Assembly: GCA_002104905.1 (NCBI GenBank)
Contig: MCFE01000288.1
Coordinates: forward strand, 39,008 to 103,007
Length of the DNA: 64,000 bases
From: Basidiobolus meristosporus CBS 931.73
Taxonomy: Eukaryota > Fungi > Basidiobolomycota
Reading direction: 5' to 3'
A model generated the notes under the pieces. It saw nothing but the letters and a program-made list of their open reading frames with translations, was not told the origin of the DNA and made no database searches. Of the stretch, positions 9,178-64,000 are shown piece after piece (within the stretch, counting starts at the first letter, position 1; each line of letters opens with the position of its first letter). A program made the position numbers and the translations under genes.

Positions 9178-9200
9178 CTTTAGAATAAATCAAAGCAATT

Positions 9201-21589: not shown

Positions 21590-24500
21590 ACACCTACCAG
21601 TCATGTTCAGCCGCTAAGAAAATATATCTGAGACAAAAAATCTTTACTACAAAGATGCTGCCAGGAGAAAAAATCAAAAAGCTAATTGACAGAATTACCC
21701 TGTTGGTAGATGACATAGAATCTGTGGGTGTACCAACTACTGATGAAGATGTGATGGTTACCATCTTGAATAGCCTGACAGACAGATTTCAGGGCGTTGT
21801 ATTAGCCCTAGAGTCCAGAACTGAGGATTTGATCTAAATTATGTATATGGAAGGCTCTTGGATGAAGAATGAAGAAAATCAAGTGCTAATAAGAAGGAAG
21901 AAGAAAATGCTATAGTAAGCAATAATCACCCACAAAGAAGGTGCCCTAGACCCTACAAAGGCAACAGCAACCTGTTTTGTAACTACTGCAAAAGGAAAGG
22001 ATACACAGTAGACTAGTGTCTCAAAGAGAGATAATTAACAAAAGATGCCTGAAAATGAAAATACTGCAACAACTGAAGATAGACTATTCATATCTGCACT
22101 AAATATGACGCAAACAAGGATTCTGAGATGAGGTACATTGACTTTGGAGCATCTCAACATTTTACACTCCAAAAAGAGCTTTTTACCTAATATCAAGAAA
22201 TTACAATTAAGTAGGTTGTCATGGGTGACAATAGAATGCTTGATGTAGTAGGAAAAGGAACTCTCCAGGTAAACCTAAGAAGCAGTACAGGAAGGAAGCT
22301 GCACACTGATCTTTAAAAGAGTACCCTATGTACCAGAAATAGCCAAGAACCTACTATCTGTAAGCTAGGCCACTGCAGAATGACTTTGGGTCAGCTTTGA
22401 CAACTCTGTCTGCAAGATCACTGATCAAAATGGTGCCCATTTTGCATTGGGTATCAGAGATCAGAATCTATACAAGTTGACTTATTATCCATCATATTTG
22501 GAAGCCAATATAAGTAACTTATATGAAGAAACACCAATCCTTTGCCACTGGAGATATGGGCACATCAATTTTGAGTATTTGTGCAGAATGATCAAAGACC
22601 AGCCAATATCTGGTGTAAGAGTTGATATCCCCGCTATTTTGGAACACTGTGAAGCCTGCATATATGGGAAATAAGCCAGACAACTGTTCAAGAGCTCTGG
22701 GTTAGTCAAAATTAAGAAAATATCAAATCTAATTCACTCAGATCTGTGTGGACCTATGCAAAATTTATCCTTGGGCAGGATGAAGTATTCAATCACTTTT
22801 ATTGATGATTATACAAGGTACACGTAGATCTGCTTCATGGAGAGAAAAGAAGAAGCCCTGGCCAAGCCCAGAGAGCTTAAAGCCAAGGTGGAGAGAGAAA
22901 CTGGTGAAAAAATCAAGAAAATATGCTCTGACAATGGTGGATAATATACCTCAAAACTCTTCATCCACTTCTACAAAACTAATGGGATAAAGCAAGAGAC
23001 TACAGTCCACACTCCCCTCAGCAAAATGAAGTAGCAGAATATGCTAACAGAACAAAAATTGATATGGCAAGATCCATGATCCATGATTGATAATTATCCT
23101 ACAATTTTTGGGCAGAATGAGTTGCTACAGCTGTATACCTTAAGAATAGGAGTTACATCAGGATACTTTGTGATTCTGCCTCATTTCAAGCATGGTACTG
23201 ATACATACCAAGTGCAGAAAATCTAATGATATCTGGGTGTACAGCATATGCCAAGAAACTACCTGAAAATCAGTCATAATTAGAGCCAAAAAGTGTAAAA
23301 TGCATGTTTTTGGGCCACTGCATTGCAAGTGAAGCATGCAGTCTCTACATTACCAAAGCAAAGAAGCTAATCAAGTCCAGGGATGTGTTGTTTGAAGAAA
23401 ATTCAAAAATTTCACAAAAAATGACATCAGATGATGACAAAAATGTGATCACAAGTACACCAATTGTCAGGTTTGAAGCAGAGCAAAATAATTAAGATCT
23501 TTTCATCACAGAGGACTCTACAACTATGGTTCAGCCTGAATTAGTGCCCAGGTATGTCCCAGAAGTGATCAATCCTGTAACAAATGCCTGGAGATCCAAT
23601 TGGACAAGAAATAGCCCAAATTACTTTTACAATGAGGGTACAAACTTAGACCATGCCTATTCAGTCCATATTTATGAACCCCAGACTGTTAAAGAGGCTC
23701 TAAATAGCCCTCAGACAAGGTTTTGGTGATCTGCAATGACTGAGGAATATCAGGCCCTGATGGAAAATCAAACTTGATACTTAGTCAATTTACCAATCAA
23801 CCAAAAATCAGTTGGATGCAGAAGGGTCATCAAGACACTATACAGGGCTGATGTTACAATTAGAAGATACTAACCAAGACTTGTGGCCAAGGAATGCTCA
23901 AACAAAAGGACTTGACTATACTGAGACCTTTGCACCGGTTGCCAAGTTTAATTCCATTGGATTGATATTGGCTATTGCAGCCAAATATAAGTTTTTGATT
24001 CATGAAATGGATGTAAGAACTCTATTTTGAATGGAGAACTTGATGAGGAAGTGTATATGAACCAATCTGATGGGTTTGTTGACCAAAATAAACCCAATTT
24101 AGTCTGCAAGCTCAAAAATTCTCTATATGGTCTCAAATATTCACCAAGAGCCTGGATTTGCAAGATAGGTTCATATTTAGATACTTTGAGTTTCAAAAGG
24201 AGTAATGCTGACTATAGTATATACTATAATCCAGATAGAGCAAATCCAGTTCTATTAGCTCTATATGTGGATGATCTTATTATAGCTGCTGTGGTGGTGT
24301 ATATTGTCAGGCTCCTTATCTTCTTCTATAAAAAGTTGTGTCTTCTGGCAAGCAGTATGTGTCCTCTTATTGTTGGGTGTTACCCCACAGAATGTTGATT
24401 GTAGTCCTGGGTTTGATCCCTGAATAGTGTACCACACTGACCCATCAGAATAGTTGGTAGTTGTAGCCTTAGTACTGGTCTTCCATGGTCTGCCTAACAG

Positions 24501-27500
24501 AAGGTCAAAGTTTGCCTTCTGGCAGATAAAGAGGGGAAGCCAGACCTTGATTCCTTGTACCTCAATAGAGAACTTGTGCACAACACCATGGAGTGGGCTA
24601 GATCCCAAGCTTGCATCAGTTGTGTTCCATGCAATATCTCTGTAAACAGGCAGTAGCTCCTTGCTTTTAAGTGTCTTCCAGAAGTCTAGCGGCATAACAC
24701 AAATCTCTGAGCCACAGTCAATATGGCAGTCAACAGGGTCATCATATATATACCCTTTCACCACAGCAGTTGCACAGAGTAAAAGGTCTTGTACTTAGTA
24801 GTGTTGTCATCCTTTTGGTGGTCTTCATGGTTTGTCTGAATTATATGGGTGTCCATATGTTCAACAGCTTGTCTTCTTGTTCTAAGCTGCTCATCAAAGG
24901 TCTTCCTAACAGACACTGATACACCCATGATTTCTCCAACCAACACAGTGGGGTTCTGCTTCAGCAGCTTCTCAGTAACCAGTTGAGGGCTTCAGTAGCC
25001 TGCTATCTTTGAGGTCATCTGAGGGTGAGGCAATGGGTCATGGGTGGGCAGTATTCCAGGCCTCTTGTCAATGATAACCTCAGGCTCTTCATACCGTGGT
25101 CTTCTAAGGATAGGCTTGGCAGGTTCTTCAGGAATATGTCTCTTAGTAGCAAAGGCAGCTACTTTGTATTTTCTGTTGTCAGGGCTGCTTGGACTCACTT
25201 TATCTGTCTCAATAGGGGCATCAACAGTAATCTTTTAGTTGCTGAGTCAGATTTCTGGAAAAGGGCTCTCATTCTCCCTCTTTGGAAATTAGTGGGAATC
25301 CTTTTTCCTTCCTTTCAGCAAGCATTCCATCAGCATCAAACTGCACTGTTCCTTCTCTAAGTAGCTGGCTAAGCTCTGAGCATTCTTGTCTGGCATGCTG
25401 AGTAGAGTCACACCAAATGCAGTGTCTGGGTAAAGGTCTTTGGCCCTCAGTAGCTACCTCAGCTGAGCCATTAATCTTGAGGGCTAGCTTTTGTAGCTGT
25501 TCAGCAAGTTGGTCAATTCTGTTGGTAGTGTAGGTCTGATTGTCAGGAACAGCACTCTTTGGCGCCTTGGTTGACTGGTCAGGCTGATTAGATGTCAGGA
25601 GTCTCCTTAAGGTAGAAGTTTGCTTTGCCTCTAGGAGTAAACATTTCATCTCTGCAAAGCAAGGAATGCCAGACTTGTCATCTTTGGCTGCATGTAAGTC
25701 AACTTTCCTTGCCAAGTCCTGGGGAAGCCCTTGTGAAAGGTATAGTGTCATGGTAAACTTAGTTATAGCCGGGGACTCTAGGAGTGGCTTGGCCATATCT
25801 TCATACTATTGAATGAACTCCTCAAGTGGTAGCTTGGAAAGTCCCGTCCTTCCAAAGTGTCTAAGGTCTTCAATTCCATAGTATATTTGGGGTCTACCAT
25901 ACTTGGTCTGTTGCTAGGTCTTCAATAAGCCTCAGTCAGTGAGAATGTCTCCTTGTCTGAGAAGCTTAGTGGTAATATCATTGGTGCAGTAGTAGGGGAA
26001 GTCTTCAGCCATTTCTTGCTCAGATAGGCTGCACATCTTGCAGAGCTTCTCCCACTGAAATATGAAGCTTTCCATATTCTTTACATCAAACTGTGGGGCT
26101 CCATGTGAGAGTGGTAATGGCATAGAGCTCATTTTGGGGTAGGTAGGATGGTGTTGTAGTCTTGATAATATTGGTAGTCACTTTTCAATAAATGGGTAAT
26201 GGCTCAAATTTTCAGGTAAATCTTGTTGGGTCCTAGGGAGCTTGTATGAAACCCCCATGTTGGGTGCCAAATATGTGGCGGTGTATAAGTCCTAAGGGCA
26301 AAATCCAGCCAACATTTCTCAAGAGTGAATGTGTCTGGGGTGTTCACTGGGTGCAATAACCTCTGGCAAAGCTTGCTAGGAATACTGGGCCTTTTGTCTA
26401 ATCTAATGTGAAGGGGGATAAAGCCTCAAGCTTGTCAAGGGAAAACTAATCAGCTACAATCCCCAACCTAGTTGGCATCTTAACAAAAGCTTATAATGGC
26501 TTCAATGTCCTTTGAGATGACAGTGTACTAAAGCTTCCAAAGTCAAAACAACTGTAAACTGCACCAACAGGGACTTGATAAGAATGCAGCTTTGACCAAT
26601 AGTTACACAAGACAGAAAAGTGTCTTTGCCGGTACAAGAACAAACTTGGGAAAACAATCAAATATAATAAAATGTACCAACTCTGAGTATTTCTCACAAG
26701 TAGTGCCTCCAAAGTCAATTGGCTGTCAGCGTGGTTTCCTGGGAGTATTGTCAGGTCTGAGTCAGAAAATAGTGGTAATAGGCAGCGGTGATCTCACTAT
26801 TCAATAAGTTGGAATATTGGCAGAGGGATCATTTATTTTAAGGGATAGCCTCCCTTATATACTTTTTGCCGCTCAAATTTTTGCTAGAAAATACTTTCCA
26901 GAAGTTTAAAGAAGGTAGTAGACAGCCAATCATGTCATTGTGTACTAAAATAACTCAAATTCTTGGCGGATTGTTCCATGAGACATAGCAGTACCTAGCC
27001 AATCAGATAGTGTAATATGAAACCTCTGTGTCATGTAGTTACCTTATATGGTAGTAGGATATGAGGGTTATGAAACCAGGATGGCCACATGACATAGGCT
27101 CAGTTGGGGATACTTGCCTTATATGGTTAATGTCTAATCTTGGCATCTTGGCAAGGAATAGGAATAGCTTGTGCAATGAGTAAATAGTGACAAATAGTTT
27201 GCCAGGTCACATAGTAATAATCACATAGGCAGATAGAAAATATTGCAATTTGGGACAATAGTAATATATGGGGGTAATCCTTTTTAGGGAAGTGAACCTA
27301 TGGGAATGAGCACATCTGCCGGTGGGTGTCACTGTGAACCCACTACACCGCCAATAACACTGAAACATTGAAAGAGACTAAATCCAGCCTATCTAAGGAG
27401 TTCAAGATGTAGCAATATGGTTAAGAAAGCTTCTTACAGATTTAGGCCAATGTCAAAAATGCTTATTACTTTATTTCACAAAAATCAAGGTTGTATAATA

Positions 27501-28747: not shown

Positions 28748-30429
28748 TGGTTATGAGCCCCAAGCTGTCACTCTTGGCAATGTCTACTACTGCTATTACT
28801 GGAACTTTTCCCTCTGCTGAAAAGTTGGATGGATCTAACTACCAAGTGTGGAAGGTGAAGATGGAGATGCTGTTACAAGAGAGAGGCCTTTTAGATATTG
28901 TCATGGGCAAAGAATGCCCTCCTAAAAATGTGGGAGAGGAAGCCTAAAAGTACCAGAAGAAAGAACAAAGTGCCTTTAACTGCATTTGCCTTAATGTTAA
29001 GGGCAAATTGCTAATTCAATGCTCAAGAGCAAAAAAGGCAAAGAATGCCTGGAAGGCATTGAAAGTGTTGTGTTGTATTATGATTAGTTTGGGGTTTGTT
29101 CTACATTGTACAGGCTAATCAACAATATACAACAACTTCCAGTATGCTAATACTGAAATAGTTAACTGAGAGCTTGATATACCAATAGAAGATATAACAT
29201 TCACTAATATCCTCAATCTTAGGCTCAAAATATACTTTAAGCAGTGTTTCTCACTTCTACAGTAGTGTTCTGACCTTCTGTTGACTAATGGGCTTATTTA
29301 CTTCTATAGTAATGTTTCTTAATCTGGAAGTTATTTTCCTTTCTGAGATAATATTTCCTAATATGGAAGTTCCTTAACTCCCCTTTAACCTAAAGGGGTG
29401 TGTACTAGAAGTCTCTAAAGGGGTCTTTAGAGTAAAGGGGCTTCTTAGAGGGGACTTTTCCTACAGAAAAGTGGTAGTTTCTTGTAGAACTTAGATGGGA
29501 TTCTCTTGAGCTTTGCAGTCTCTGTACTGATGTAATACCTGTCAAAGTCAGAATACTCAACAGTGCAAGTGATGCAGGGGAACTCTTATAACCTTTAAAC
29601 TTGTAATTTTAGTGTGGAAACTCTGGAAAGAGAGGCTCTCCTTTGTTTTTTAGCTGGGGAAGTCATGTATATGAAATTTCTGAAGGATCAGAGCTTTTGG
29701 GCAATTGCGCTGTAGTGGGGTGACAGTGACACCCACTGACAGATGTGCTCATTCCCTTATTTTCTACTTCCCTATATCTCTACTACACTTATTTTAGTTT
29801 TATCCCATTTGTCTTACCCAATCAGTACTATCCCATAAGCCGGTTGACTATCACACCTGCTTACCTTATTAGACTTGTTCCACTGTACCGTGCCAGGGCG
29901 TGCGGTGTGATCCGCGGTTGTAAAGAATGATTGGGTGCAATATTATAGCTACCAGAAGGAAGGATTGTTCTTGGACAATTTCGCACTATGTGGGACAATC
30001 TTGCACACTATGGCACAATCTGACACGATGAGGTTGGAACGGATGATTGCGCTCACTCCAATTGGATGGTATCTCAGTGGTTAATTGGTCCAAAAGTATC
30101 CTGAAGCTGGCAGCCCCCAATTGGCTCATTGACTACAAAAAAAGCTACCTGATTTGCCATCAAATATCCCATTTTGCTCATTGAGCAAGTAAATCCCTGA
30201 TCCTAGTGATTGGACAAGGTGTCATAGCCAGCACGCAAGCAATCATGTAGGTGCAAAACAGATCCAATAGCTGCACTGGTATTACAGATGACGTATATAT
30301 ATGCAGAGTGTTTATTTATAGGGGTACTGCCTCAAATGTGAGACAATCTTGATATTACTTATATCAAAAATTTGATGATCACTGATTTGCAACGGCTCGA
30401 TTCTGATTGCAAAAAAAAAGGGTTGTCGG

Positions 30430-31500
30430 TGTGGTGGTGTATAAGTCCAAGGGAGAGATACGTCCAACACTTCTCAAGTGTTTTGTGTGTGGGGTGTTCA
30501 CTGGGTGCGATAACCTCTGGCAAAAGCTTGCTAGGAATACTTGGGTTCTGTCTCTAATCTAATGTGAAGGGGAATAAAGCCACAAGCTTGTCAAGGGAAA
30601 ACTATTGAGCTACAATCCCCAACTTAGTTGGCGTCTTAACAAAAGTATGTGCTGGGTTCAGCGTCCTTTGAGATGACAATGTACTAAAGCTTCCAAAGTC
30701 AAAACAACTGTAAACTCCACCAGCAGGGACTTGATAAGAATGCAGCTTTGGTCAATAGTTACAAAGACAGAAAAGTATCTTTGCCTGTACAAGAACAAAC
30801 TTGGGAAAGAATCAAATATAATAAAAGATACCTACTCTGAGTATTCCTCACAAGTAGTGCCTCCAAGGTCAGTTGGCTGTCAGCGCGGTTTCCTGGGAGT
30901 GTCCTGTGGTCTAGGGTTGGAAGTTCAGGTAGCAGCAGGTAGCAGTGATCACACTAATCAACAAGTCGGTATATTGATAAAAGGGATGATGATTTATTGT
31001 TGAGGGATAGCCTCCCTTATATACTTTTCTCACTGGCTAAGTGATTACTAATCAAGGTGTTCCAGAAGGTTCCGGAGATCAATAGAAATCTTAATGACAT
31101 CAGAATGACCTAAGAATGTTCTAAGTAGGTGCCGGAAGGTTCTAAGAGGCACAGCACATCCAACCAATCAGGAATCAGTATTCTGAAACCTGTGTAACAT
31201 GGGGATACCATATATGGTATGGAAATGGTAGGGATGGTGACACGGGCTGATCATGTGTCACGGGTACTGGCGCGGGTACTTGCCTAATATAGAAGTACTT
31301 ATAGCTAGTAATCTTACATAAAGTGAGGGGTAACTTATGCAATAAGGTAAGCAGGTGTGATAGTCAACCGGCTTATGGGATAGTACTGATTGGGTAAGAC
31401 AAATGGGATAAAACTAAAATAAGTGTAGTAGAGATATAGGGAAGTAGAAAATAAGGGAATGAGCACATCTGTCAGTGGGTGTCACTGTCACCCCACTACA
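30430..31500 (-). repeat. gypsy-A solo LTR (1071 bp)
   Basis: TG...CA termini, TSD TCGG/TCGG; the empty site is seen near 7900 and 61815. Confidence 0.96.
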
Positions 31501-31540
31501 TCGGGGTCATTACAAATGTGAGTAATTCAAAGCGATCGCA

Positions 31541-32869
31541 TCATCTTCTCCTGGATTTTTTTCTCACAGGGATTACTACTGAAGCATTTGGTAGTGACTC
31601 ACTTTGCACACCTATACTACTTCCTGGCTGACTATCATCTTGGCTACTTGTGTATTTGTAGTCAGTATTTTGCCTCCTAGTTGATGAGTGCGATGCTACA
31701 GCTTGGCCGCGCTGAATTGCTCCAACTGAACCAACTGAACTGGCCTGTAGTGCCACGTGCTGACGCATTCTTTTACTTGCCAAGGGCTCCGGTGGTTGAG
31801 GCACTTCATGTTGGTCATCATCAGTCAGCTCACCAGAAGTAACTTGCTGATGGTCAGGCAAAATGGCACGCGCAGGCGCGCCTTGACGTGTTGAGATGGC
31901 CCTTGGCTGAGTTTGATGTGATGCTGCAAGTTGACGCGACTCGGTCTGCTCCAATGGACTTGTGTCTAAATGAGCAGTTTGGCAAGTTCTTGTAGTTTTG
32001 CTCTGAAGCGCGCGCGTTGACTTGAGGCAGGGCGTTCCGGTAAAGGGTGTTGGTGTACTCTGGACTGACGTGCGCCGGCGCGCTGTGGTTGCAAGAGATG
32101 GTAGGGAATCCAGCAAGGCATGCTGGCACAATCTGGATGATGTTGCTTGAGGTCTGTATTCTTCCTCCTGAAGCTCACCATCTGATTCCTCAAGGTATTC
32201 ACTTACCCTCTGTCTGATACTTTGGAGCTGTTGCCTGGATGAGTCCTGTGTATATTGCTCTCGGAAGCCACTTAGCTCTGCTAATATATCACGTAGTACA
32301 TTAGTCATTTGAGGCAAAAACTCATTCAAAATCTCTTTGGTTCCCAAAGTTGAGGCACAAACGGACGTGTCCGGCCTGTACTGTGCAAATTGCGCGCAAA
32401 ATTGCTCCCGCGCGGCTTCTTTGTCAAATCCCCTCACTCTCAGCTCATTCTTGATTTCAATACTTGTCTTGTTATATATCTTTTTACATACATTGGCTGG
32501 CATCTTGATGTAGAACTCATGCCACAGCTTTCTACTCAAATTCTTCCATCTTTGTCGACTCTCTGAGGTATCTAGTTCTGCTAGATTAATCAGTGGTGCC
32601 CAAATATCTGTATGAAGGCTCATCATAGACACTTGGGCCATACTAAAATCATTTGGTGAGAATTTGAACGGATCCAACATTGACTTTTTTGGTCCGGACC
32701 GCGCTTGTGAGCTGGGGGATGGGTTTGTCTGGGTTGTACTAAAGATGAGTTGAGGCTTGGTATGGGGACCATAGCAACGGATTTGGATACTTATACAGCC
32801 GTATATTGACATCAACCTGGTCTTATATGAAATATATATGAAAACTAATGTGATTGTTGAAATCTCCAC
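31541..32869 (-). CDS. Transposon ORF2, up to 442 aa; putative Myb/SANT-like DNA-binding accessory protein with a low-complexity C-terminus and basic tail (true start may be downstream)
   Basis: DIWAPLINLAELDTSESRQRWKNLSRKLW resembles the Myb/SANT/MADF W...RWKNL helix; RKKSRRR NLS-like end; homologues in the other copies. Confidence 0.7.
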   Translation of the reverse strand: MEISTITLVFIYISYKTRLMSIYGCISIQIRCYGPHTKPQLIFSTTQTNPSPSSQARSGPKKSMLDPFKFSPNDFSMAQVSMMSLHTDIWAPLINLAELDTSESRQRWKNLSRKLWHEFYIKMPANVCKKIYNKTSIEIKNELRVRGFDKEAAREQFCAQFAQYRPDTSVCASTLGTKEILNEFLPQMTNVLRDILAELSGFREQYTQDSSRQQLQSIRQRVSEYLEESDGELQEEEYRPQATSSRLCQHALLDSLPSLATTARRRTSVQSTPTPFTGTPCLKSTRALQSKTTRTCQTAHLDTSPLEQTESRQLAASHQTQPRAISTRQGAPARAILPDHQQVTSGELTDDDQHEVPQPPEPLASKRMRQHVALQASSVGSVGAIQRGQAVASHSSTRRQNTDYKYTSSQDDSQPGSSIGVQSESLPNASVVIPVRKKSRRR

Positions 32870-33131
32870 ATATTATGCATGATGCATCTTGGATCGCGTT
32901 GACACGGATCAGATCACATCAATCGCAGATTTCCTATTTGATTATAGACCTATGATTAAAGCATCAATAAAAGTATCAAGGCATTGTTTGCGGATGATTT
33001 TTGCAACATAATGATGGGATACGTGGCAATTGATGGAGACTTGACCATAATGTATTAAAAATCAGATAAATAAGGCGGATCGCGCCAAATCAATTCAAAC
33101 TGCCTTTATACAATCATCCACCAATTTTAAT

Positions 33132-34016
33132 ATGACTTACTCATCTGAATGGTCTTTTCTCATCAATCCCATCACTACCACTGGACTTCCTTTTGACACA
33201 CTAGAGGAGATCTATTCCAAGTACTGTGGACCATCAACCCCAATCTACTCAAGGAGATCCCTTGTCAAGCTTCTCTGCTATTACAAGAACTATTGCCCTA
33301 CAAGGTTTCATCCCACCATCCATGGCAACAAAAGTCCTAGAAGCTTTCATTCCCAGCTGACAGCAATGGAGAACCACCTTGCAGAGGGTATGAATGACTT
33401 AGAGCAAGCTTGGAATACTAGGTTCAGAAGCTCCAATAGACTTCCATATCCCAGAGTGTTCAGCAACAGGTTCCATATCAGGAGTATTTTGGATACCTTC
33501 CCAGTGAGGATTAACAGACCTTCTAGAGGGCAGAGACACTTTTATTCTGGCAAGTACATGGCACACTGTGTGAAGTTTCAAGCACTGTCTGACATTGAGG
33601 GTAACATCATCTGGTTTAGTGGGCCATTTGCTGGAAGTAGGCATGACAAAGCACTCTGGGTAGAGAATCATCCTGAATTCAGTAGAGGGGAGAAATGTAT
33701 GGCAGACTTAGCCTATATAGGAGAGGATTGTCAGAGATTAGGATGTATTACAGCTTATAGGAAGCCAAGGAATGGTGTACTTAGCAGGAAGCAGAAGCTC
33801 TACAATGAGATATTTAATCATTTCAGAGTAAGGGTAGAGCACACATTTGGATATCTGAAGAGATTCAGCATATTGGCAGGTAAATACAGAGGAAAGTCAT
33901 ATATAGGAGAAAACAGCAGAATAGGTAAAATAGTTAAGATACTTATTAATGCACAGTATGTTCATACAAGAAGACATCCACTGAGAGAAATGTGTCTGGA
34001 GCATTATGAAGAGTAA
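33132..34016 (+). CDS. DDE transposase, 294 aa, catalytic triad apparently intact (LDT, ADLAY, RVEH)
   Basis: Open ORF with DDE_Tnp_4-type motifs, divergent from ORF2. Confidence 0.9.
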   Translation: MTYSSEWSFLINPITTTGLPFDTLEEIYSKYCGPSTPIYSRRSLVKLLCYYKNYCPTRFHPTIHGNKSPRSFHSQLTAMENHLAEGMNDLEQAWNTRFRSSNRLPYPRVFSNRFHIRSILDTFPVRINRPSRGQRHFYSGKYMAHCVKFQALSDIEGNIIWFSGPFAGSRHDKALWVENHPEFSRGEKCMADLAYIGEDCQRLGCITAYRKPRNGVLSRKQKLYNEIFNHFRVRVEHTFGYLKRFSILAGKYRGKSYIGENSRIGKIVKILINAQYVHTRRHPLREMCLEHYEE

Positions 34017-35599
34017 ATAAAGCAAGGAAAGCACTATTCTGAGCAACATAAGTAAGATTGAGTAAAATTACCAGTAGCTGTATCATACCACAGGCATCAT
34101 GGTAGAAATTATAGTGCCAGATAGTGCCGTAGAGTGCCAGATCAATCCGGCACCATAAACAGGCTGGCACTATGTGGCACTATCCAATGGAACAAGTCTA
34201 TTGCCTAAGTTACCCCTCACTTTATGTAAGATTACTAGCTATAAGTACTTCTATATTAGGCAAGTACCCACGCCAGTACCCGTGACACATGATCAGCCCG
34301 TGTCACCATCCCTACCATTTCCATACCATATATGGTATCCCCATGTTACACAGGTTTCAGAATACTGATTCCTGACTGGTTGGATGTGCTGCGCCTCTTA
34401 GAACCTTCCGGCACCTACTTTGAACATTCTTAGGTCATTCTGATGTCATTAAGATATCTATTGATCTCCAGAACCTTCTGGAACACCATGATTAGTAATC
34501 ACTTAGCCAGTGAAAAAAAGTATATACGGGAGGCTATCCCTCAACAATATATCATCATCCCTTTTATCAATATACCAACTTGTTGATTAGTGTGATCACT
34601 GCTACCTGCTGCTACCTGAACTTCCAACCCCAGACCACAGGACACTCCCATGAAACTGTGCTGACAGCCAACTGACCTTGGAGGCACTACTTGTGAGGAA
34701 TACTCAGAGTAGGTATCTTTTATTATATTTGATTCTTTCCCAAGTTTGTTCTTGTACAGGCAAAGATACTTTTCTGTCTTTGTAACTATTGACCACAGCT
34801 GCATTCTTATCAAGTCCCTGCTGGTGGAGTTTACAGTTGTTTTGACTTTGGAAGCTTTAGTACATTGTCATCTCAAAGGACGCTGAACCCAGCACATACT
34901 TTTGTTAAGACGCCAACTAAGTCGGGGATTGTAGCTCAACAGTTTTCCCTTGACAAGCTTGTGGCTTTATTCCCCTTCACATTAGATTAGAGACAGAACC
35001 CAAGTATTCCTAGCAAGCTTTTGCCAGAGGTTATTGCACCCAGTGAACACCCCATGCACAAAACACTTGAGAAGTGTTGGACGTATCTCTCCCTTGGACC
35101 TATACACCACCACAGCGCATGCAATACATGCAATACATGCAATACAATGCTAAAATCTTATAATAGCACAGATTGGACATAGGCGCAGCATCTATGAAAG
35201 CTTCACATGATTTGGTTGGCTGGTTCAAAAGTTACACACAATCAAAGTCACCATAGTAATCCTAGCAATAGAGACCTAGTATATATAATAATTGGACTCT
35301 TTGGGTCATAGCTCTTTAAGTACTGCTTCAAATGAGCTGTAAATTGAAACATATGTTGACTACTGCGTGTTCTCTAAGACATATTATTTTTGGGTGTATT
35401 GCCTGTCAGGGTCTGGAGTATTTGTGCTTCCAATTTATAAATTCTTGATCTTTCACCTGTGTTTTATGATAGCAAAAAGCAAAATAAAGAAATGAGTGAA
35501 ATATTAGTCTTGGGATATTGTAGTAATGGAATACTTTCCATTGCCACTAGTCTCCCCTAACTTTGAGAAATAATGCCCTCATTATTACTTCTGATATGG

Positions 35600-38887: not shown

Positions 38888-38907
38888 ATTGTCATCTCAA
38901 AGGACAC

Positions 38908-52109: not shown

Positions 52110-53222
52110 TTTGCTTTGACCCCAGCTCAAAGCTGAGAGGGGGGTGGATGTAGTGGGGTGACAGTGACACCCACTGACAGATGTGCTCATTCCCATATTT
52201 TCTACTTTCCTATATCTCTACTACACTTATTTTAATTTATCCCATTTGTCTTACCTGATTGGTACTATTGCATAAGCTGGTTGACTATCACACCTGCTTA
52301 CCTTATTGCATAAGTTATCCCTCACTTTATGTAAGATTACCAGCTAAAAGTGCTTTTATATTAGGCAAGTACCCATGCCAGTACCTGTGACACATGATCA
52401 ACCTGTGTCACCATCCCTACCATTTCCATACCATATATGGTATCCCTATGTTATGCAGGTCTCAGAATACTGATTCCTGATTGGTTGGATGTGCTATGCC
52501 TCTTAGAACCTTGCGGCACCTGCTTAGAACATTCTTAGGTCAATCTGATGTCATTAAGATTTCTATTGATATCTAGAACCTTCTGGAAGACCATGATTAG
52601 TAATCACATAGCTAGTAAGAAAAGTATATAAGGGAGGCTATCCCTCAACAATAGATCATCATCCCTTTTATCAATACACCAACTTGTTGATTAGTGTGAT
52701 CACTGCTACCTGCTGCTACCTGATCTTCCTACCCCAGAACACAGGACACTCCCAGGAAACTGCGCTGACAGCCAACTGACCTTGGAGGCACTACTGGTGA
52801 GGAACACTTAGAGTAGGTATCTTTTATTATATTTGATTCTTTCCCAAGTTTGCTCTTGCACAGGCAAAGATACTGTTCTGTCTTTGTAACTATTGACCAC
52901 AGCTGCATTCTTATCAAGTCCCTGCTGGTGGAGTTTACAGTTGTTTTGACTTTGGAAGCTTTTGTACATTGTCATCTCAAAGGATGCTGAACCCAGCACA
53001 TACTTTTGTTAAGACGCCATCTAAGCTGGGGATTGCAGCTCAATAGTTTTCCCTTGACAAGCTTGTGGCATTATTCCCCTTCACATTAGATTAGAGACAG
53101 AACCCAAGTATTCCTAGCAAGCTTTTGCCAGAGGTTATTGCACCCAGTGAACACCCTACACACAAAACACTTAAGAAGTGTTGCACGCATCTCTCCCTTG
53201 GACCTATACACCACCACAGTGG

Positions 53223-56200
53223 TAGAATCTCTTGAGTTAGGATCTAGAAGTATTTGGTCATATCCTGAATAAAGATCCAATGTGGTAGTCAGAGGATATC
53301 CAGTAAATGACTCAATATACTCATGTTGTATAGGTGGCTGCATAGCATCTTTGATGGTGACCTTATTCAAATGCTGTATGTCTTGAATAAACTGTAGACT
53401 TCCATTTTTCTCTGACAGTGTAAACCAGGGGATACAATAAGGTCCAGAGCTGTATTCAATGACTCCACTTTGAAATCTTGATTGTAGCATTTCAATTGCT
53501 TTGCTCTGTAATCTTGTGGGAATATGATATGATCTCAGTGCCCATGGTGTATATTCAATGGTATGGATCTTAACCAGTGGAAATAGCTCTGTGGATAAAC
53601 ATCCTCTTTGTTCATCATTAAATGCAAAGACATTATCATAGCATTGTAGCATAGTCAAAAAGGGACTATTCTCCTCAGTGGTAAGAGTAGTCCCAATAGC
53701 TAACTTCTTGAGCTTCTCTTCTGTGAGTCTGATTTTGTCATATTGGTGCAGAGGCTCTATTTGAGAATTGCAGTGGCCTGATGGTGAGATTCCAGTAGAC
53801 ACTGGCTTTGCTTTCAATGCAACTGGCTTATACTTGGTATTTGTCTTACTTGTTGTTGACAGAATGATGTGCTGATCATAAAACAAAATATCATCATGAA
53901 CCTGAGTATTTTGTACTGGAATTAGGTCTGCATTTCTTGGATTATTCACTTCTGCTGCACAAAAAGTTGCCCTTCTTTTTCAATTGTTAGAAGTGATTGT
54001 CAGCCATAAGCTTCCATCAGGACTGTTATAAGCTTGTAGAAGAGATTTTCTCTAATATGATTGTCCTAACAATGCCTCAAAAGTGGGTCAATTGGCAACA
54101 ATAAAAAGGGAAAAGTAACCCTGATTCCTCCAATTTCAGTTGGTACAGAGTGACAAAGTCCAAGCTTCTTCTCTGTTGCACCTGTAGCAGTTCTCATATT
54201 CCAGTCAACTTCTGTTGAAGGCAACTTGATTTTTTCAAGAGTCATAGCAGTGATAGCATTGGTTTCTGATCCGGAATCAAAAGCACATTCCACTTCAACA
54301 TTGTTGATTGTAGCAGCATGGCTTCCTATTGTAATAGAGTAAAAGGCTTTTTCCACTTCAAATTGTAGTTGTGCACTTGATAACATTGTTGACAACTATT
54401 CTTGATAATTCTTCAGCATACCTTTGTTCATAGGCTTAACTATTACCAGTAGTAGTTGACTGAGATTGTTGATAGCAGTGAACATTTCTTGATTAGTAAG
54501 TTGTGGAAATGGAGATTTCCAGAATTTGTCAATAACTCTCTGTGTAACTGCAGTAGTGTCATACTTAGATTGAGATTGCAACTGTTTTTTTTGGAATCTT
54601 GATGCTTCTGGCTGTGCTGGTATTTCAACAACTGGCTGATTTCTCTTGTTGGTACATACCTTTTTTGGATTGCTCTCTGTAGAGACATACTTTCTCTTAT
54701 CAATAAGGCAATTAAATTCTTCAGCTTCCTCATTTTTCATTAGATATTCTTACACCTGCCCTGATAGGTCTGATACTGTAAGTATATAAGGTTCATTGCT
54801 TGGAATTTCTGCAGTTTTTTGGATTTGTATGAAATTTGATGTTGTGGTGCTTTTACTTGATTCTTCTTGAGCAAGTATAGAGGACCTCATTCCACTGTAA
54901 CCTCTGTTGATAGGCAAGGGGTTTCCAGCAATATCACAGATTGTCCCATAGCAATCAATCATAACTTTATGACAGTCAAAATCAATATTCAATATATGAC
55001 AACCATAATGGCTATGTTTAGCAGATTCACAGTACGCACAATACTTGGTTTGCTGTGGATAATTACTAGTTGTTTTGGGATAATCTGGTCTTGCCTTGTT
55101 GATGCTTGACAATGGTACTGTTGTATCCAAGAGAAAAGTGTAATAAAACTCTTGAATGAATTAACTGAACCTAAGTGACAACTAAGTGCAGAATCTTAGA
55201 ATTGTCAAGAGTGCCAGAAATATTAGCAGAGAGGTTCTGGTCTAATATTGGTCTTATATATAGCTGAGTTGGGCTATAAAGGCAACAGAGTAGGTTTGCT
55301 ATGTAGGCTAGGCTTGGTGCTCTTGAGAGTGCTAGATATGCTAAGCTTGGGTAGAAACTAGAATGGATTTGTTGAATTCTTAATTTTGTTGAGACACACA
55401 GTAAACCAAAAGGTTGAGTAAACTTTATTTATATTTTTCTGATTTAGTTGCGTTAGTAAGCACCAAGAGACTGGACTAATTGAAATCTGTTGGGGTGTTA
55501 ATAGGTGCATAAAATAAATGAGAAATTGCATCATTAATCAGCTGATGTCTTGGCAACTGCTAAGTGGTTGGATAAATCTCATATGACTAATCACTTGGAA
55601 AGGCTTAGCAGATCAGTTGAGGACCTAATGACCACATGAAAATTGATTAGGTGTGGCAGCTAAATATAGATTCTGAGAAGTGATAAAATAAACCATAACA
55701 GGGATTAGTTATGTTTGGGTTAGGGAAAATCAGTTAGGGTACTAGATTTTCTAACAGAGTGAAATTGGCCAAGTTTTCAATGTTGATGCACAACAGGTAC
55801 ACTTTGAGAGTTCAACTTAAGAGTCAGTTTTCCTAATGCATCAATTAACTCATTAACCTGATCACTTTGTGGGTCATTTGTACAATGAAGAATTTGTTTA
55901 GCTGGAGTGGAAATCCTCATTTGAATATTAATGGAATCCATGATTTGTCTCCCTGATTGATAGCTTAACACCATTTGTTTAACACTATTGTAGGAGCTTG
56001 TAGCCTGAAGTTGGTGGCTAATGGCATTACATATCTCAGGAGGCATATTCATCAGAAAATAGTTTCTTTGATAAAATCCTGGAATTCTAATAGCTGCTTC
56101 AACATGCCTTGCTTTTGACTCAAACTTTTGAATGTACTTTTGCAAGGGTTGGGTCTTGTTGTGAGGCATTTCTAGCTCATTTAGTGTGACAGACTGTGCT

Positions 56201-56477
56201 TCCTTTTGGTACTCAGCTAAAATAGCTTGTTGAGCAGTGTCCCAGCTATAGTTAGTGCCAACATATATCTAAATGGATCCAAACTTTGTAAGAATCTTGA
56301 TACTACAACTTCAGAGAGAAAGGGAAACAACTGGATTTTGTTCTTGTGTGATAGCTCAAATGCAGCAGCTATATTGTTAGACTCATCTAGAAACTCAGTA
56401 ACATTCTCTCTGGAGAATATTACTGGAATGGCACCTTTAAAAGTGGCTACTAACTCTGGGAGTGGTGTATCAGTCAT
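53223..56477 (-). pseudogene. gypsy-B gag, knuckle, protease and RT N-terminus
   Basis: IFSRENVTEFL, CAYCESAKHSHYGC, FDSGSETN, LDLYSGYDQI; interrupted at 55139-55756. Confidence 0.87.
55139..55756. repeat. Probable solo LTR of another family (618 bp) inside gypsy-B gag
   Basis: TGTAATAAAA...TTTTCTAACA imperfect inverted termini; non-coding; no clean TSD and no second copy in the window. Confidence 0.5.
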
Positions 56478-56520
56478 TCTTGTAACATTTCTTGATGCTT
56501 GTATAGTGAAAGGTTCAAAC

Positions 56521-56538
56521 TACCCAGATCCTCCACCA
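56521..56538 (-). promoter_or_regulatory. gypsy-B PBS TGGTGGAGGATCTGGGTA (tRNA-Ala-like, tentative)
   Basis: Next to the 5' LTR; TGGTGGA matches the typical ...UCCACCA end of tRNA-Ala. Confidence 0.55.
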
Positions 56539-59500
56539 AATTTTTGTTGTGTTGTATTATGATTAGTTTGGGGCTTGTTCTAAAATGTAGAGGCTAATCA
56601 ACCATATACAACAACTTCCAGTATGCTAGTACTGAAATAGTTTACTGGGAGTTTGATATACCAACAAAAGATATAACTTTCACTAATATCCTAAATCTTA
56701 GGCTCAAAATATACTTTAGGCAGTATTTCTCACTTCTACAGCAGTGTTCTGACCTTCTGTTGACTAATGGGCTTATTTACTTCTATAGTAGTGTTTCTTA
56801 ATCTGGAAGTCACTTTCCTTTGTGATAAAATATTTCCTAATATGGTAGTTCCTTAACTCCCCTTTAGCCTAAAGGGGTGTGCTGTAGAAGTCTTTATAGG
56901 GGTCTTTAGACTAAAGGGGTGCCTAAAGGGGTGTCTTCAGAGTAAAGGGGCTTCTTAGAGGGGACTTTTCCAACAGAAAAGTGGTAGTTTCTTGTAGAAC
57001 TTAGATGGGATTCTTTTGAGCTTTGCAGTCTCTTTACTGATGTAGTACCAATCAAAGTCAGAATACTCAACAGTGCAAGTGATGCAGGGGAAGTCTTATA
57101 ACTTTTAAACCTGTAATTCTAGTGTGGAGATTCTGGAAAGAGAGGCTGTCCTTTATTTTTCAGCTGGGGATGTCATATATATGAAATTTCTGAAGGATCA
57201 AAGCTTTTGGGCTATTGCACTAGCAATACACATGATGCAAAGCTAAAACTTTGTAGTGGCACTGATAGGACATAGGTGCAGCACCTATGAGAATTTCACA
57301 TGCTTTGGTTGGTGGGTTCAGAAGTTACACACAATCAAAGTCACCATAGTTATCCTGGAAATAGAGACCTAGTATATATAATAACTGGACTCTTTTGGTC
57401 ATAACTCCTTAAGAATACTTCATATGAGCTGCAATTTGAGACATGTGTTGGCTACTGTGCGTTTTATATGATGTACTATTCTTGGGTAGATTGCTTGTAA
57501 GGGTCTGGAGTATCTGTCCTTCCAATTTGTAAATTCTTGATCTTTCACCTGGGTGTTATGACAGCAAAAAGCAAAATCAAGATATGAGTGCAATATTGGT
57601 TTTGGGATATTTTAGTAATGAAATGCTTTCTGTTATCACAAAAGACACCTACCAGTCATGTTCAGCCGCTAAGAAAATGTATCTGGACAAAAATTATTTA
57701 CTATAAAGATGCTGCCAGGAGAAGAAATGAAAAATCTAATCAACAGAATTACCCTGCTGGTAGATGAAATGGAATCTGTGGGCATACCAACTACTGATAA
57801 GGATGTGATAGTTACCTTCCTGAATACCCTGACAGACAAGTTTCAGGGCTTTGTATCATCCCTAGAGTCCACAACTGAAGATTTCATCTTAAATTATGTA
57901 TATGGAAGGCTCCTGGATGAAGAATTAAGAAAATCAAGCACCAATAAAAAGGAAGAAGAAAATGCTTTAATAAGCAATGACAACCAACAATGGAGGTACC
58001 CAAGATCCTACAAAGGCAACAGCAACCAGTTTTGCAACTACTGCAAAAGGAAAGGACACACATCAGTCTGGTGTCTCAAAAAGAGAGATAATCAGCAAAA
58101 GAAGCCAGAATGTGGAAATGCTGCAACAACTGAAGATAGACTATGCAAATATGCACTAAATATGACCACAAACAAGTATTCTCAGATGTGGTATATTGAC
58201 TCTGGAGCATCTCAACACTTTACACACCAAAAAGTACTTTTTACCCAATATTAAGAAATTTCAATCAACAAGGTTTTGATGGGTGACAATAGAACACTTG
58301 ATGTAGTGTGAGAAGGAACTATCCAAGTAAACCTTAGCAGCAGTGAAGGAAGCCACACACTGACCTTTAAAGATGTACTCTATGTACCAGAAATAGCCAA
58401 GAACCTACTATCTATAAGCAAAGCCACTGCAGAAGGATTCAGTCTCACATTTGACAATTCTTGATGCAATATCACTGATCAAAATGGTGCCCATATTGCT
58501 TTGGGTGTCAGAGATCAGAATCTATACCAGTTGACTTAGATTCCATCATATATCAAAGCCAATATAAGAAACTTAGATGAAGAAACACTAATGCTTTGGC
58601 ACAGGAGACTTGGGCACATCAATTTTGATTATTTATGCAAAATTATCAAAGATCAGCTAATTTCCAGAGTAAAAATTGATCACCCAGCTAATTTGGAGCA
58701 CTGTGAAGCCTGCATATATGGGAAACAGGCCAGACAACTGTTCAAGAGCTCTGGGTTAATCAAAACTAAGAAAATATTAGATTTGATTCACTCAGATCTG
58801 TGTGGACCTGTGCAAAATATATCCTTAGGTGGGAAGAAGTATTTAATCACCTTTACTGATGATTATACAAGATACATGTGGGTCTACTCCATGGAGAGAA
58901 AAGAAGAAGTTCTGTCTAAGTCCAGTGAGTTTAAAGCCATGGTAGAGAGAGAAACTGGTGATGAAATCAAGAAAATATGCTCCAATAATGGTAGATATTA
59001 TACATCAAAATATTTCATCCACTTCTGCAAAATTCATGGGATAAAGCAAGAGACTACTGTACCATACTTCTAACAGCAAAATGGAGTAGCAGAACGCACA
59101 AACAGATCAATAATTGATATGGCAAGAGCTATGATTTAAGATCAAAAATCATCCTATGATTTTTGGGCAGAATTGGTTGCTACAGCTGTATACCTGAAGA
59201 ATAGGAGTTATAACAGAGTACTTCATAATTCTACTACATTTGGGAGTATGGTATGGATTCAGACCAAGTGCTGAACATCTAAGAATATTTGGGTGTACAG
59301 CATTGGCAAGAAACTGAGCCAAAATCTGTCAAAATTTCAGCCAAAAAGTGTAAAATGCATATCTTTAGGCTACTGCAATGAGAGTAAAGCATACAGACTC
59401 TACAATACCAAAGCAAAGAAGATAAACAAGTCCAGGGATGTGTTGTTTGATGAGATTTCAAAATTTTCACAAAAAAAGTCATCAGATGATGACAAAAATC

Positions 59501-62026: not shown

Positions 62027-63096
62027 TGTAGTGGGGTGACAGTGACACCCACTGACAGATGTGCTCATTCCCTTATTTTCTACTTCCCTATATCTCTACT
62101 ACACTTATTTTAGTTTTATCCCATTTGTCTTACCCAATCAGTACTATCCCATAAGCCGGTTGACTATCACACTTGCTTACCTTATTGCATAAGTTAACCC
62201 TCACTTTATGTAAGACTACTAGCTATAAGTACTTCTATATTGGGCAAGTACCCGCGCCAGTACCCGTGACACATGATCAGCCCGTGTCACCATCCCTACC
62301 ATTTCCATACCATATATGGTATCCCCATGTTACACAGGTTTCAGAATACTGATTCCTGATTGGTTGGATGTGCTGTGCCTCTTAGAACCTTCCGGCACCT
62401 ACTTAGAACATTCTTAGGTCATTCTGATGTCATTAAGATTTCTATTGATCTCCGGAACCTTCTGGAACACCATGATTAGTAATCACTTAGCCAGTGAGAA
62501 AAGTATATAAGGGAGGCTATCCCTCAACAATAAATCATCATCCCTTTTATCAATATACCGACTTGTTGATTAGTGTGATCACTGCTACCTGCTGCTACCT
62601 GAACTTCCAACCCTAGACCACAGGACACTCCCAGGAAACCGCGCTGACAGCCAACTGACCTTGGAGGCACTACTTGTGAGGAATACTCAGAGTAGGTATC
62701 TTTTATTATATTTGATTCTTTCCCAAGTTTGTTCTTGTACAGGCAAAGATACTTTTCTGTCTTTGTAACTATTGACCAAAGCTGCATTCTTATCAAGTCC
62801 CTGCTGGTGGAGTTTACAGTTGTTTTGACTTTGGAAGCTTTAGTACATTGTCATCTCAAAGGACGCTGAACCCAGCACATACTTTTGTTAAGACGCCAAC
62901 TAAGTTGGGGATTGTAGCTCAATAGTTTTCCCTTGACAAGCTTGTGGCTTTATTCCCCTTCACATTAGATTAGAGACAGAACCCAAGTATTCCTAGCAAG
63001 CTTTTGCCAGAGGTTATCGCACCCAGTGAACACCCCACACACAAAACACTTGAGAAGTGTTGGACGTATCTCTCCCTTGGACTTATACACCACACA
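62027..63096 (+). repeat. gypsy-A LTR with non-matching flanks (CCGC / ACGC)
   Basis: Near-identical to 30430-31500; left flank is transposon ORF2, right flank is the interior of another LTR-A. Confidence 0.93.
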
Positions 63097-63329
63097 ACGC
63101 TGAACCCAGCACATACTTCTGTTAAGATGCCAACTAAGTTGGGGATTGAAGCTCAATAGTTTTCCCTTGACAAGCTTGTGGCTTTATTCCCCATCACATT
63201 AGATTAGAGACAAACCAAAGCATTCCTAACAAGCATTTGCCAGAGGTTATTGCACCCAGTGAATACCCACACACAAAACCTTTGAGAAGTGTTGGATATA
63301 TCTCTCCCTTGGACTTATAGACCATCATA
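63097..63329 (+). repeat. 3' ~230 bp of an older gypsy-A LTR
   Basis: Starts ACGCTGAACCCAGC, ends TTATAGACCATCATA, followed by GCGC. Confidence 0.85.
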
Positions 63330-64000
63330 GCGCCAAATGATTTTATTATGGCCAAGTGTCTATGATTAGCCTTCAGACAGATATATGGGCACTACTTATT
63401 AATCTAGCAGAACTGGATACCTCAGAGAGTTGACAGCAATGGCAGAATTTGAATAGAAAGCTGTGGCATGAGCTCTCCATCAAGATGCCAGCCAATGTAT
63501 GTAAAAAGATAAATAACAAGACATGCCTTGAGATCAAGAATGAGCAGAGATTGAGGGGATTTGATGAGGAAGCCACACCCCCAATGATTCCACATGCAAT
63601 TTTCACAGTACATGCTGGACAAATCTGTTTGTGCTTTAACTTTAGGATCCAAAGAGATTTTGAATGAGTTTTTTCCTCAAATGACTAATGTACTATGTGA
63701 CATATTGGTAGAGCAAAGTGGCTTCCAAGAGTAATACACACAGGACCCATTAAGGCAACAGTTCCAAAGTATCAGACAGCGGGTAAGTGAATTCCTTGAG
63801 AAATCAGAAGGTGAACATAATGAGGAGAACAGAGACTGTGAGCAACTATGTCTAGATTGCACCAGCACACCTTGCTGAATTCCCTACCATTCACTGCAAC
63901 ATTGGCACACTGGTGCACATCAGTCCAATCTATGCCAAGACCCCTCACAAGAGTGCCCTGCATCAAGTCAACGCATGCCAGTTCAACACACACTTCAGCG
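63330..64000 (+). pseudogene. Diverged transposon ORF2 fragment (fifth copy, opposite orientation to copy 4)
   Basis: NRKLWHELSIKMPANVCKK...EIKNE matches ORF2; stops and indels. Confidence 0.82.

Follow-up and report, generated by a model that had tools for sequence, protein, structure and literature searches.

A 2017 review described sequence-specific integration, among LTR elements, as confined to the errantiviruses of insects and elements derived from them (PMC5408687). Errantivirus subgroups use TATA, CGCG or ATAT targets (PMC5408687), and ZAM targets CGCGCg, a site bound by the ZAM integrase (PMC2527525). For the ZAM subgroup, the literature agrees with the first-pass annotation that some Drosophila gypsy-group elements prefer CGCG-type targets (PMC2527525, PMC5408687). 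Retroviruses with 4-bp target site duplications (TSDs), such as PFV and MoMLV, select a flexible pyrimidine-purine (YR) step centrally (PMC4422553). In arthropods, CpG (methyl-CpG) was proposed as an integration cue for the retrotransposon lineage CopiaMBD, which accumulates in CpG-dense DNA (PMC6673714). Chromoviruses, the common type of fungal Ty3/gypsy elements, pile up in repeat-rich DNA (PMC3248453).

Here we describe a Ty3/gypsy family (LTR subfamilies A, A2 and C) in a CpG-starved, probably fungal genome, which in all likelihood uses 4-base targets with CG at the centre almost always. The sample consists of nine A/A2/C target sites in a window of 64 kb, the whole stretch of DNA that was analysed. 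The elements and the two ORFs discussed below are:

24290..27347, reverse strand: element 'a' (subfamily A2), 5' LTR (26274-27347) plus 1.98 kb of gag-side internal sequence; TSD 24286-24289 CTGC / 27348-27351 CCGC, based on host RT ORF read-through
29711..35114, forward strand: solo LTR-A 'b'; TSD 29707-29710 GCGC / 35115-35118 GCGC
30430..31500, reverse strand: solo LTR-A 'c'; TSD 30426-30429 TCGG / 31501-31504 TCGG
37854..53218, forward strand: element X2, full-length; TSD 37850-37853 GTGG / 53219-53222 GTGG
38908..39709, forward strand: solo LTR-C; TSD 38904-38907 ACAC / 39710-39713 GCGC, empty site ACGC
42766..49936, reverse strand: element X1, full-length, nested in X2; TSD 42762-42765 CTGG / 49937-49940 CCAG
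47349..48725, reverse strand: gag ORF of X1, 458 aa, weak DUF4100 match
51123..52109, forward strand: integrase ORF of X2, 328 aa, rve core and C-terminal part
62027..63096, forward strand: LTR-A 'h', with unlike flanks, 62023-62026 CCGC and 63097-63100 ACGC
63097..63329, forward strand: partial LTR-A 'i' (positions 837-1071); right flank 63330-63333 GCGC

The A/A2/C elements are Ty3/gypsy (Metaviridae) LTR retrotransposons with the organization gag(DUF4100)-PR-RT-RNaseH-IN. Their direct LTRs, about 1.07 kb long, start with TGTAGTGG and end with CCACCACA (termini TGT..ACA); they have TG..CA ends and short terminal inverted repeats, and are adjoined by a candidate tRNA primer-binding site and a polypurine tract. 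Along X1 and X2, the Pfam order was DUF4100 (gag), RVP_2 (weak), RVT_1, RT_RNaseH_2, Integrase_H2C2 and rve. X1 is 7171 bp long, with LTRs at 42766-43836 and 48866-49936 (94.7% identity). The LTRs of X2 (93.4% identity) lie at 37854-39945, where the 5' LTR holds a 211-bp MITE and the solo LTR-C, and at 52149-53218. No third ORF (env) was found in the 5027-bp internal region. Segments of gag and pol take it up, and the gap between the integrase ORF and the 3' LTR is just 40 bp. The gag ORF had no homologs among 5.8 billion proteins. The database proteins closest to the integrase were metagenome proteins (at most 42% identity) and a single protein of Puccinia striiformis (39%).

All nine target sites reported by the first-pass annotation were correct on re-reading, both in their 4-mers and in their coordinates, which give the position at which each TSD copy starts. 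Its count of eight N-CG-N sites, with GTGG as the ninth, breaks down as follows. N-CG-N is still readable directly in seven of the nine sites, and one further site, CTGG/CCAG, has CCGG in its empty paralog. GTGG/GTGG is compatible with CG decay only, and is the one site without direct CG evidence. CG was therefore central in 8/9 target sites, either in the TSD itself or in the empty paralog, against a background of 0.5%. The targets lay in eight different sequences. At all six paired sites the TSD was 4 bp long, a length confirmed by the empty paralogs, and no target motif extending past the TSD was visible in the nine sites. BLAST with LTR-A, A2 and C gave no additional copies in the window, so no A/A2/C copy was omitted.

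An empty paralog or a host ORF that reads through allowed a check on five targets, each of which pointed to CG. Removal of the insert 24290-27347 (element 'a') let the flanks rebuild a single RT reading frame (..YVDDLIIAANNTETL..); within this element, the gag-side internal sequence is joined to the final bases of the 3' LTR through the microhomology TATACACC. For 'b', GCAC stands at 57217-57220 in the empty paralog, which aligns without a break. DNA transposon E, at about 29868-34198, interrupts this solo LTR and in turn holds 'c', the youngest copy (99.5% identity to 'h'). The empty paralogs of the 'c' target, near 61817 and 7907, read TTGG, and one contig of public run X2 jumps over 30427-31502, the 'c' insertion. 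LTR-C (802 bp, 79% identity to LTR-A across 380 bp) entered a CpG at LTR-A position 838; its target reads ACGC in three LTR-A copies and ATGC in three. Where X1 entered X2, the empty CCGG was read from the corresponding internal sequence of X1. An empty paralog was also looked for at the GTGG/GTGG target of element X2, and none was found. The flanks of 'h' lie in different sequences, CCGC inside transposon E and ACGC inside 'i', at the same CpG as LTR-C used. The position 838 CpG was thus used twice, by different inserts. The right flank of 'i', GCGC, sits in an E copy that has diverged. Paralogs of E read CCGC/CCAT at one of the two single junctions and TTGC/TCAC/TTGC at the other.

The other elements of the window served as controls:

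1481..10317, forward strand: LTR family G, 368-bp LTRs; 5-bp TSD GGTAT (1476-1480) / GGTAT (10318-10322)
5194..8628, no strand assigned: DNA transposon E, TIR AGACTTGTTCC; 3-bp TSD ATA
10716..15622, forward strand: small LTR element, 367-bp LTRs; flanks AAAT / AAAG
29066..57640, forward strand: gypsy family F, host of 'b' and X2, LTRs 29066..35548 and 56545-57640; TSD AAAG (29062-29065) / AAAG (57641-57644)

Further 3-bp TSDs were ATT for the E copy inside 'b', ATT for a MITE at 38677-38887 and AAT-type for a MITE at 9405-10135. The TSDs claimed earlier for the other families (GGTAT/GGTAT, AAAG/AAAG, AAAT/AAAG and 3-bp AWW) were all recovered, and the CG-centred signal, as claimed, spans all three subfamilies (A, A2, C) and is missing from the other window elements. 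The occurrence of a CG-centred, 4-bp staggered cut in A, A2 and C, and not in those elements, supports a real preference.

CG was indeed the rarest dinucleotide, with 318 occurrences in 64 kb (o/e 0.12), or 0.5% of the window dinucleotides; TA, TG and CA were each 14-17 times commoner. The probability of at least seven of nine sites showing CG was 3e-13 at twice the window CG frequency, and ranged from 3e-15 to 3e-8 for per-site CG frequencies of 0.5% to 5%. Overall, a chance origin of the pattern was put at about 1e-12. The outer bases do vary (CCGC, GCGC, TCGG, ACGC, CCGG), as had been proposed, though they are mostly G or C (14/16 half-sites). This excess is within what surviving-CpG context predicts (P=0.057).

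Mismatched TSD halves are explained by CpG -> TpG/CpA decay. The young copies 'c' and 'h' have 14 CpGs, and in the 27 alignment columns with CG in any copy, the X1 and X2 LTRs retain 4-5, with TG or CA in the others. Because the X1 and X2 LTRs lost most of their CpGs, decayed TSDs are expected for these two elements, and kept TSDs for the young inserts. Repeats here shed CpG fast, so the TE targets of each family should be mostly young copies, an expectation that fits the young-in-young nesting and the fact that one LTR-A CpG was used twice.

Beyond the window, LTR-A end flanks were read from public-run contigs as loose-end consensus 4-mers (17-40 contigs per LTR-A end), plurality calls without per-position counts that are biased by the aligner clipping position. 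They were ATGC, CTGT, CCGC, CCAT and ACAG, with CCAC in a second organism. Their centres were CG, TG or CA throughout, and a control end of transposon E gave ATAT/ATTT. Metagenome contigs with related integrases (33-42% identity) contributed few junctions: GCGG/GCGG (L027), ACGG (L006), CCGC (L009) and ACGT (L003), the last scored ambiguous, with a left junction that pairs with the right only after a one-base shift. These four relatives had integrase identities of 39-42%. The contigs holding these CG-centred relatives had a near-normal CpG o/e of 0.7-1.15. Sister lineages had CTAG-like targets, and CG-type and TA-type lineages were interleaved, not separated, in the integrase tree. No recognisable LTR pair, and hence no TSD, was found at the P0028 (Puccinia striiformis), P0033, P0026, P0013 and P0025 loci. 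Several 7-kb metagenome contigs were LTR-collapsed assemblies with no flanks, and L054 and L084, in which the LTR starts were unclear, were left out.

The earlier proposal that the integrase prefers CpG is thus backed by junctions, empty sites and window controls alike. Since it is nucleotide-exact, the CG preference is most simply put down to the complex of integrase and DNA. By analogy, sequence-specific integration here is of the kind already known from Drosophila ZAM and Tirant. The best reading, to which we give a probability of roughly 0.78, is an intrinsic, lineage-specific intasome readout of the palindromic central step, as in errantiviruses (CGCG, TATA, ATAT).

The likeness to the ZAM subgroup (ZAM, Tirant) lies in the Ty3/gypsy class, in TSDs of 4 bp and in a strong preference for a palindromic target that contains CG. 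It extends to the use of other palindromes by related lineages, TATA and ATAT in errantivirus subgroups and CTAG in the sister lineages here. The two groups, compared by targets, LTR ends and ORFs, also differ: the ZAM subgroup targets CGCG, whereas only the central CG is fixed here (N-CG-N); its LTR ends are AGT..AnT (PMC5408687), against TGT..ACA; errantiviruses carry a third ORF (env), which was not found here; and the host is an insect rather than, as is probable here, a fungus. The host DNA here, moreover, loses CpG in repeats, so A/A2/C targets and TSDs decay. With PFV and MoMLV, the A/A2/C elements share the 4-bp stagger and the YR step exactly at the TSD centre, where the two-fold symmetric retroviral intasome sharply bends the target (PMC4422553). 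Retroviruses, however, prefer YR only weakly and take any such step, whereas CG is near-exclusive here despite the commoner TA, TG and CA. CopiaMBD has a captured MBD and a regional bias, in contrast to a nucleotide-exact TSD rule with no MBD. Chromoviruses bear a chromodomain, and none was detected here; their TSDs are usually 5 bp long, compared to 4 bp in A/A2/C. A literature search, with subscription journals largely outside its scope, turned up no LTR element of a CpG-depleted genome with a described N-CG-N rule.

Cytosine methylation offers a different explanation, in which the integrase or a tethered host partner specifically recognises methylated CpG and insertions home to silenced, methylated TEs. 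The first-pass annotation had raised methyl-CpG reading as a possibility, with silenced TEs as a safe haven. All nine targets are in TEs, the regional CpG o/e of 0.12 with its TG/CA excess fits cytosine methylation, and there is precedent for retrotransposons that read methyl-CpG via a captured MBD (PMC6673714). The window, however, is entirely TE, which makes insertion into TEs uninformative. A reader domain was also missing from the Pfam results: for the whole 328-aa integrase ORF, rve alone was found, and no chromodomain; the last 189 aa gave only sub-threshold noise at E<=10, with no MBD, chromodomain or other reader; and the gag-pol ORF pieces matched no MBD, chromodomain or other reader, although these copies are degraded and domain loss is possible. 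A tether would not set the cut position to the nucleotide, and the CG-centred relatives in contigs of near-normal CpG content argue for plain sequence readout. Recognition of methylated CpG is therefore unlikely, and methylation is not needed to explain the CG-centred targets. We are similarly doubtful that the intasome itself tells methylated from unmethylated CpG, with the host silencing mark as a homing signal. If it did, new copies would land in young, already methylated TEs and genes would be spared. Target choice would then follow a nucleotide-exact epigenetic rule of a kind that we know of for no integrase.

Another explanation is that integrases with a 4-bp stagger generally favour a flexible YR step, with TG/CA centres being original and CG coming from CpG-rich young targets. 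This would agree with the central YR selection conserved among 4-bp-TSD retroviruses (PMC4422553). It would also accommodate, at face value, the GTGG/GTGG TSD and the TG/CA centres of the contig consensus, as well as the use of TA by sister lineages. Yet CG is kept in 7/9 sites and TA in none, while TA, TG and CA are 14-17 times commoner; CTGG and CCAG cannot be copies of one original TG or CA, and their empty paralog reads CCGG; and the chance is 3e-8 even at 5% CpG. We regard this explanation as improbable. Hardly any weight goes to an artefact, be it from LTR boundaries set in the wrong place, from junctions that are duplicates of one another or from selective reporting. In its favour are the small sample and the choice of families, which the first-pass annotation made with the pattern already in view; yet every window copy is accounted for and the targets lie in eight different sequences. 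The CG does not belong to the LTR, since the LTR-adjacent base varies (G, C, T). The boundaries are set by the TG..CA ends, by the sides with the primer-binding site and the polypurine tract, and by empty paralogs that align without interruption.

Under the preferred reading of an intrinsic intasome readout, the integrase would make a 4-bp staggered target cut with a strong preference for CpG at the two central positions. Judging from the sequences, a two-fold symmetric intasome may recognise the palindromic CpG step by direct readout, combining contacts to the bases with a bend in the DNA at the pyrimidine-purine step. The same mode may, by analogy, operate in the Drosophila ZAM subgroup with CGCG and in the sister lineages of the present clade with CTAG.

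A CpG rule in a CpG-eroding genome would concentrate targets in young TEs and unmethylated genes, not in old silenced TEs, and insertions would return to the same few CpGs. The TSDs of CpG-centred insertions erase themselves with time; their decay on opposite strands provides an internal clock, and calls for care when annotation relies on TSDs. The rule also makes integrase sensing of 5mC directly testable. A non-errantiviral, probably fungal clade with the lineage-specific palindromes N-CG-N and CTAG would widen the errantivirus-only picture of sequence-specific integration, and would provide natural integrase variants for dissecting how target bases are read.

All nine target sites of the gypsy LTR families A, A2 and C were re-read, and all had the flanking 4-mers given by the first-pass annotation, which had described 4-bp target site duplications (TSDs) centred on CG. 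Several could be compared with empty paralogs, which are related copies of the target sequence without the insert.

Target sites of LTR-A/A2/C insertions (insert; coordinates; left/right flank; target sequence elsewhere).
1. Element a (A2 copy); 24290-27347; CTGC/CCGC
2. Solo LTR b, split by transposon E; 29711-35114; GCGC/GCGC; paralog aligned uninterrupted across the site, GCAC
3. Solo LTR c; 30430-31500; TCGG/TCGG; two empty paralogs, TTGG
4. Full-length element X2; 37854-53218; GTGG/GTGG
5. Solo LTR-C in the X2 5' LTR; 38908-39709; ACAC/GCGC; six other LTR-A copies, ACGC (three) and ATGC (three)
6. Full-length element X1, within X2; 42766-49936; CTGG/CCAG; X1's own internal sequence at the matching point, CCGG
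7. LTR h, left flank, in transposon E; CCGC; E paralogs, CCGC and CCAT
8. LTR h, right flank, in LTR i; ACGC; LTR-A CpG at position 838
9. LTR i, right flank, in a diverged E copy; GCGC; three paralogs, TTGC, TCAC and TTGC

The N-CG-N observation was confirmed, far beyond chance. The centres of the 15 flank copies were CG (nine) or TG or CA (six), and the other 13 dinucleotides were absent. At a per-site CG probability of twice the window frequency, the chance of at least seven CG sites in nine was 3e-13, and it was 3e-8 if the target DNA had then contained 5% CG. For nine of nine centres to fall in CG, TG or CA, P was 1e-7. Since the base adjoining the LTR varied, the CG is part of the target, not of the LTR.

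The window has a G+C content of 40%, and self-comparison revealed a deep transposon nest. CG is the rarest dinucleotide, as had been noted earlier (318 in the whole 64-kb window, observed/expected (o/e) 0.12); TG and CA have o/e values of 1.34 and 1.36. CpG loss is strongly context-dependent, with whole-window values against base composition of 0.22 for TCG, 0.91 for ACG, 1.33 for CCG and 1.95 for GCG. Because of this bias, the outer TSD bases were mostly G or C (14/16 half-sites; P = 0.057 when compared with the contexts in which CpGs survive). The youngest LTR copies, c and h (99.5% identical to each other), have 14 CpGs. The X1 and X2 LTRs (~94% identity within each pair) keep 4-5 CG at the 27 alignment columns with CG in any copy; the lost columns are nearly all TG or CA, often unlike between one element's two LTRs. 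In-place CpG decay predicts what was seen: TSDs intact at the young inserts but decayed at X1 and X2. Both CG decay products were present among the paralogs of the right-flank site of i. No empty paralog of the X2 target was found, and GTGG/GTGG is compatible with an origin from GCGG, without proving it.

Some insertions had a more complex history. Removal of element a and one TSD copy restored a single reverse transcriptase frame in its host (..YVDDLIIAANNTETLKE..). The gag-side internal sequence of a is fused to the final bases of the 3' LTR via the microhomology TATACACC, and from this junction the element is read as a deletion derivative. It retains both integration ends and the TSD because the deletion joined internal sequence to the LTR terminus by microhomology. 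Comparing 24290-24320 with 46880-46900, internal ..AATATACACC meets LTR-terminal ..TATACACCACCACA through 8 bp. The two flanks of LTR h (62023-63100) differ, with CCGC lying in E and ACGC in LTR-A, so h is no simple insertion; probably it is a solo LTR from recombination between two elements, or a deletion removed the left part of i. The ACGC at LTR-A position 838 was hit twice by different inserts, by LTR-C in the X2 5' LTR (38904-38907/39710-39713) and by h in i (63097-63100). Such reuse has a ~7% chance under uniform use of the 14 LTR-A CpGs and may reflect an extra context preference.

The targets previously listed for other families were reproduced.

Control insertions (family; flanks).
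Gypsy family F, host of b and X2; AAAG/AAAG
LTR family G; 5-bp GGTAT/GGTAT
Small LTR element; AAAT/AAAG
DNA transposon E and MITEs; 3-bp ATT, ATA, ATT and one AAT-type site

Centres compatible with the CG rule were seen at 9/9 A/A2/C sites versus 0/3 other LTR families (Fisher P = 0.005) and versus 0/7 other-element insertions (three LTR, four E/MITE; P = 9e-5). Transposon E (TIR AGACTTGTTCC, 3-bp AWW TSD) is present in four or more copies (5194-8628, 29868-34198, 61113-62026, 15629-18176) and MITE derivatives at 38677-38887 and 9405-10135. Its copies contain the densest CpG patches of the window (37-39 CpG per 2 kb versus 1-20 in other 2-kb bins).

Contigs from four public sequencing runs were aligned to 29600-35200; their flank consensus is independent of the nine sites. 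At each LTR-A end, 17-40 contigs continued into unlike sequence. The plurality consensus adjoining these ends was ATGC, CTGT, CCGC, CCAT and ACAG; a second organism gave CCAC. In every case CG, TG or CA occupied the middle of the 4-mer, and the remainder of the 30-letter consensus was mainly A/T; the end of transposon E gave ATAT and ATTT. These data are coarse, as they provide a consensus only, runs X1 and X2 (not the elements) share one sample, and contigs with window-like flanks are clipped elsewhere. One contig skipped exactly LTR c. Organism B (runs X5/X6, 2013) had LTR-A-like sequence for only parts of the LTR (~30350-31100 and 34650-35200), and almost no transposon E. The LTR family is common to a relative, since organism B carries LTR-A-like sequence.

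LTR-A is 1071 bp long. Since X1 has its ORFs on the minus strand, the LTRs in their true orientation read TGTAGTGG...CCACCACA. After the 5' LTR comes a candidate primer-binding site (TATTTGGCACCCAAC), and before the 3' LTR a purine tract (GAGAGGGGGGTGGA). The Pfam order, DUF4100 (gag, weak), RVP_2 (weak), RVT_1, RT_RNaseH_2, Integrase_H2C2 and rve, identifies the LTR-A elements as Ty3/gypsy by domain content. A third ORF was not found in the LTR-A-type element. The gag resembles DUF4100 clusters, recorded mainly from Basidiomycota and Streptophyta. The best protein relatives of the 328-aa integrase ORF had at most 42% identity, and the nearest named one was a Puccinia striiformis protein (39%). 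BLAST of the window with LTR-A, LTR-A2, LTR-C and the internal region gave no copies beyond those already annotated.

Contigs of the integrase matches and 80 metagenome loci were examined, and a junction was scored only if its boundary was set by both copies of the LTR.

Junctions of integrase relatives (locus; integrase identity; flanks).
L027; 39%; GCGG/GCGG (pair)
L006; 42%; ACGG
L009; 42%; CCGC
L003; 39%; right ACGT, left pairing only after a one-base shift
L017, position 6867; 40%; CTAA
L043, position 275; 33%; CTAG
L050, positions 2605/10623/12758; 33%; CTAG/GTAG, third LTR CTAT

Each of the 8 scorable centres was CG or TA, the two pyrimidine-purine steps that are palindromes (at 2/16, P = 6e-8), and the two types interleave on the integrase tree. 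The CpG o/e of these contigs is 0.6-1.15. From these junctions, the sister gypsy lineages L043, L050 and L017 appear to use another palindromic target within this clade, centred on TA and likewise strongly specific. Metagenome contig L004 has, beside a related gypsy element, a gene (5552-6109) that weakly matches Tet_JBP, a cytosine oxygenase family.

A symmetric intasome would read the central CpG step directly; the pattern alone is observed, and from it we infer the base contacts. Direct readout is the simplest account, because the signal is nucleotide-exact, palindromic, on the dyad of the 4-bp stagger, and unlike among related integrases. The annotation had also proposed possible methyl-CpG sensing and a TE 'safe haven', for which Copia elements with a captured MBD are a precedent of another kind (PMC6673714). 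This idea is unsupported, because Pfam found no reader domain (neither a chromodomain nor an MBD) in the gypsy element, CG-centred relatives lie in DNA of normal CpG content, and the window is made up of TEs throughout. Direct readout by the intasome would match known target rules. Among retroviruses with 4-bp TSDs, a flexible YR step is favoured in the middle because the target DNA bends sharply at that point (PMC4422553), and target motifs of LTR and TIR elements are palindromes that track TE phylogeny (PMC3276498). In Drosophila, the targets of errantivirus subgroups are TATA, CGCG or ATAT (PMC5408687), and the ZAM integrase binds its own CGCGCg site (PMC2527525). The LTR-A family would work like the ZAM subgroup, yet with TGT..ACA ends and without env, features on which errantivirus identity was rejected. 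The rule, a target with CpG at its centre, is thus seen in a gypsy clade outside the insects, and in a host genome whose repeats have their CpGs destroyed.
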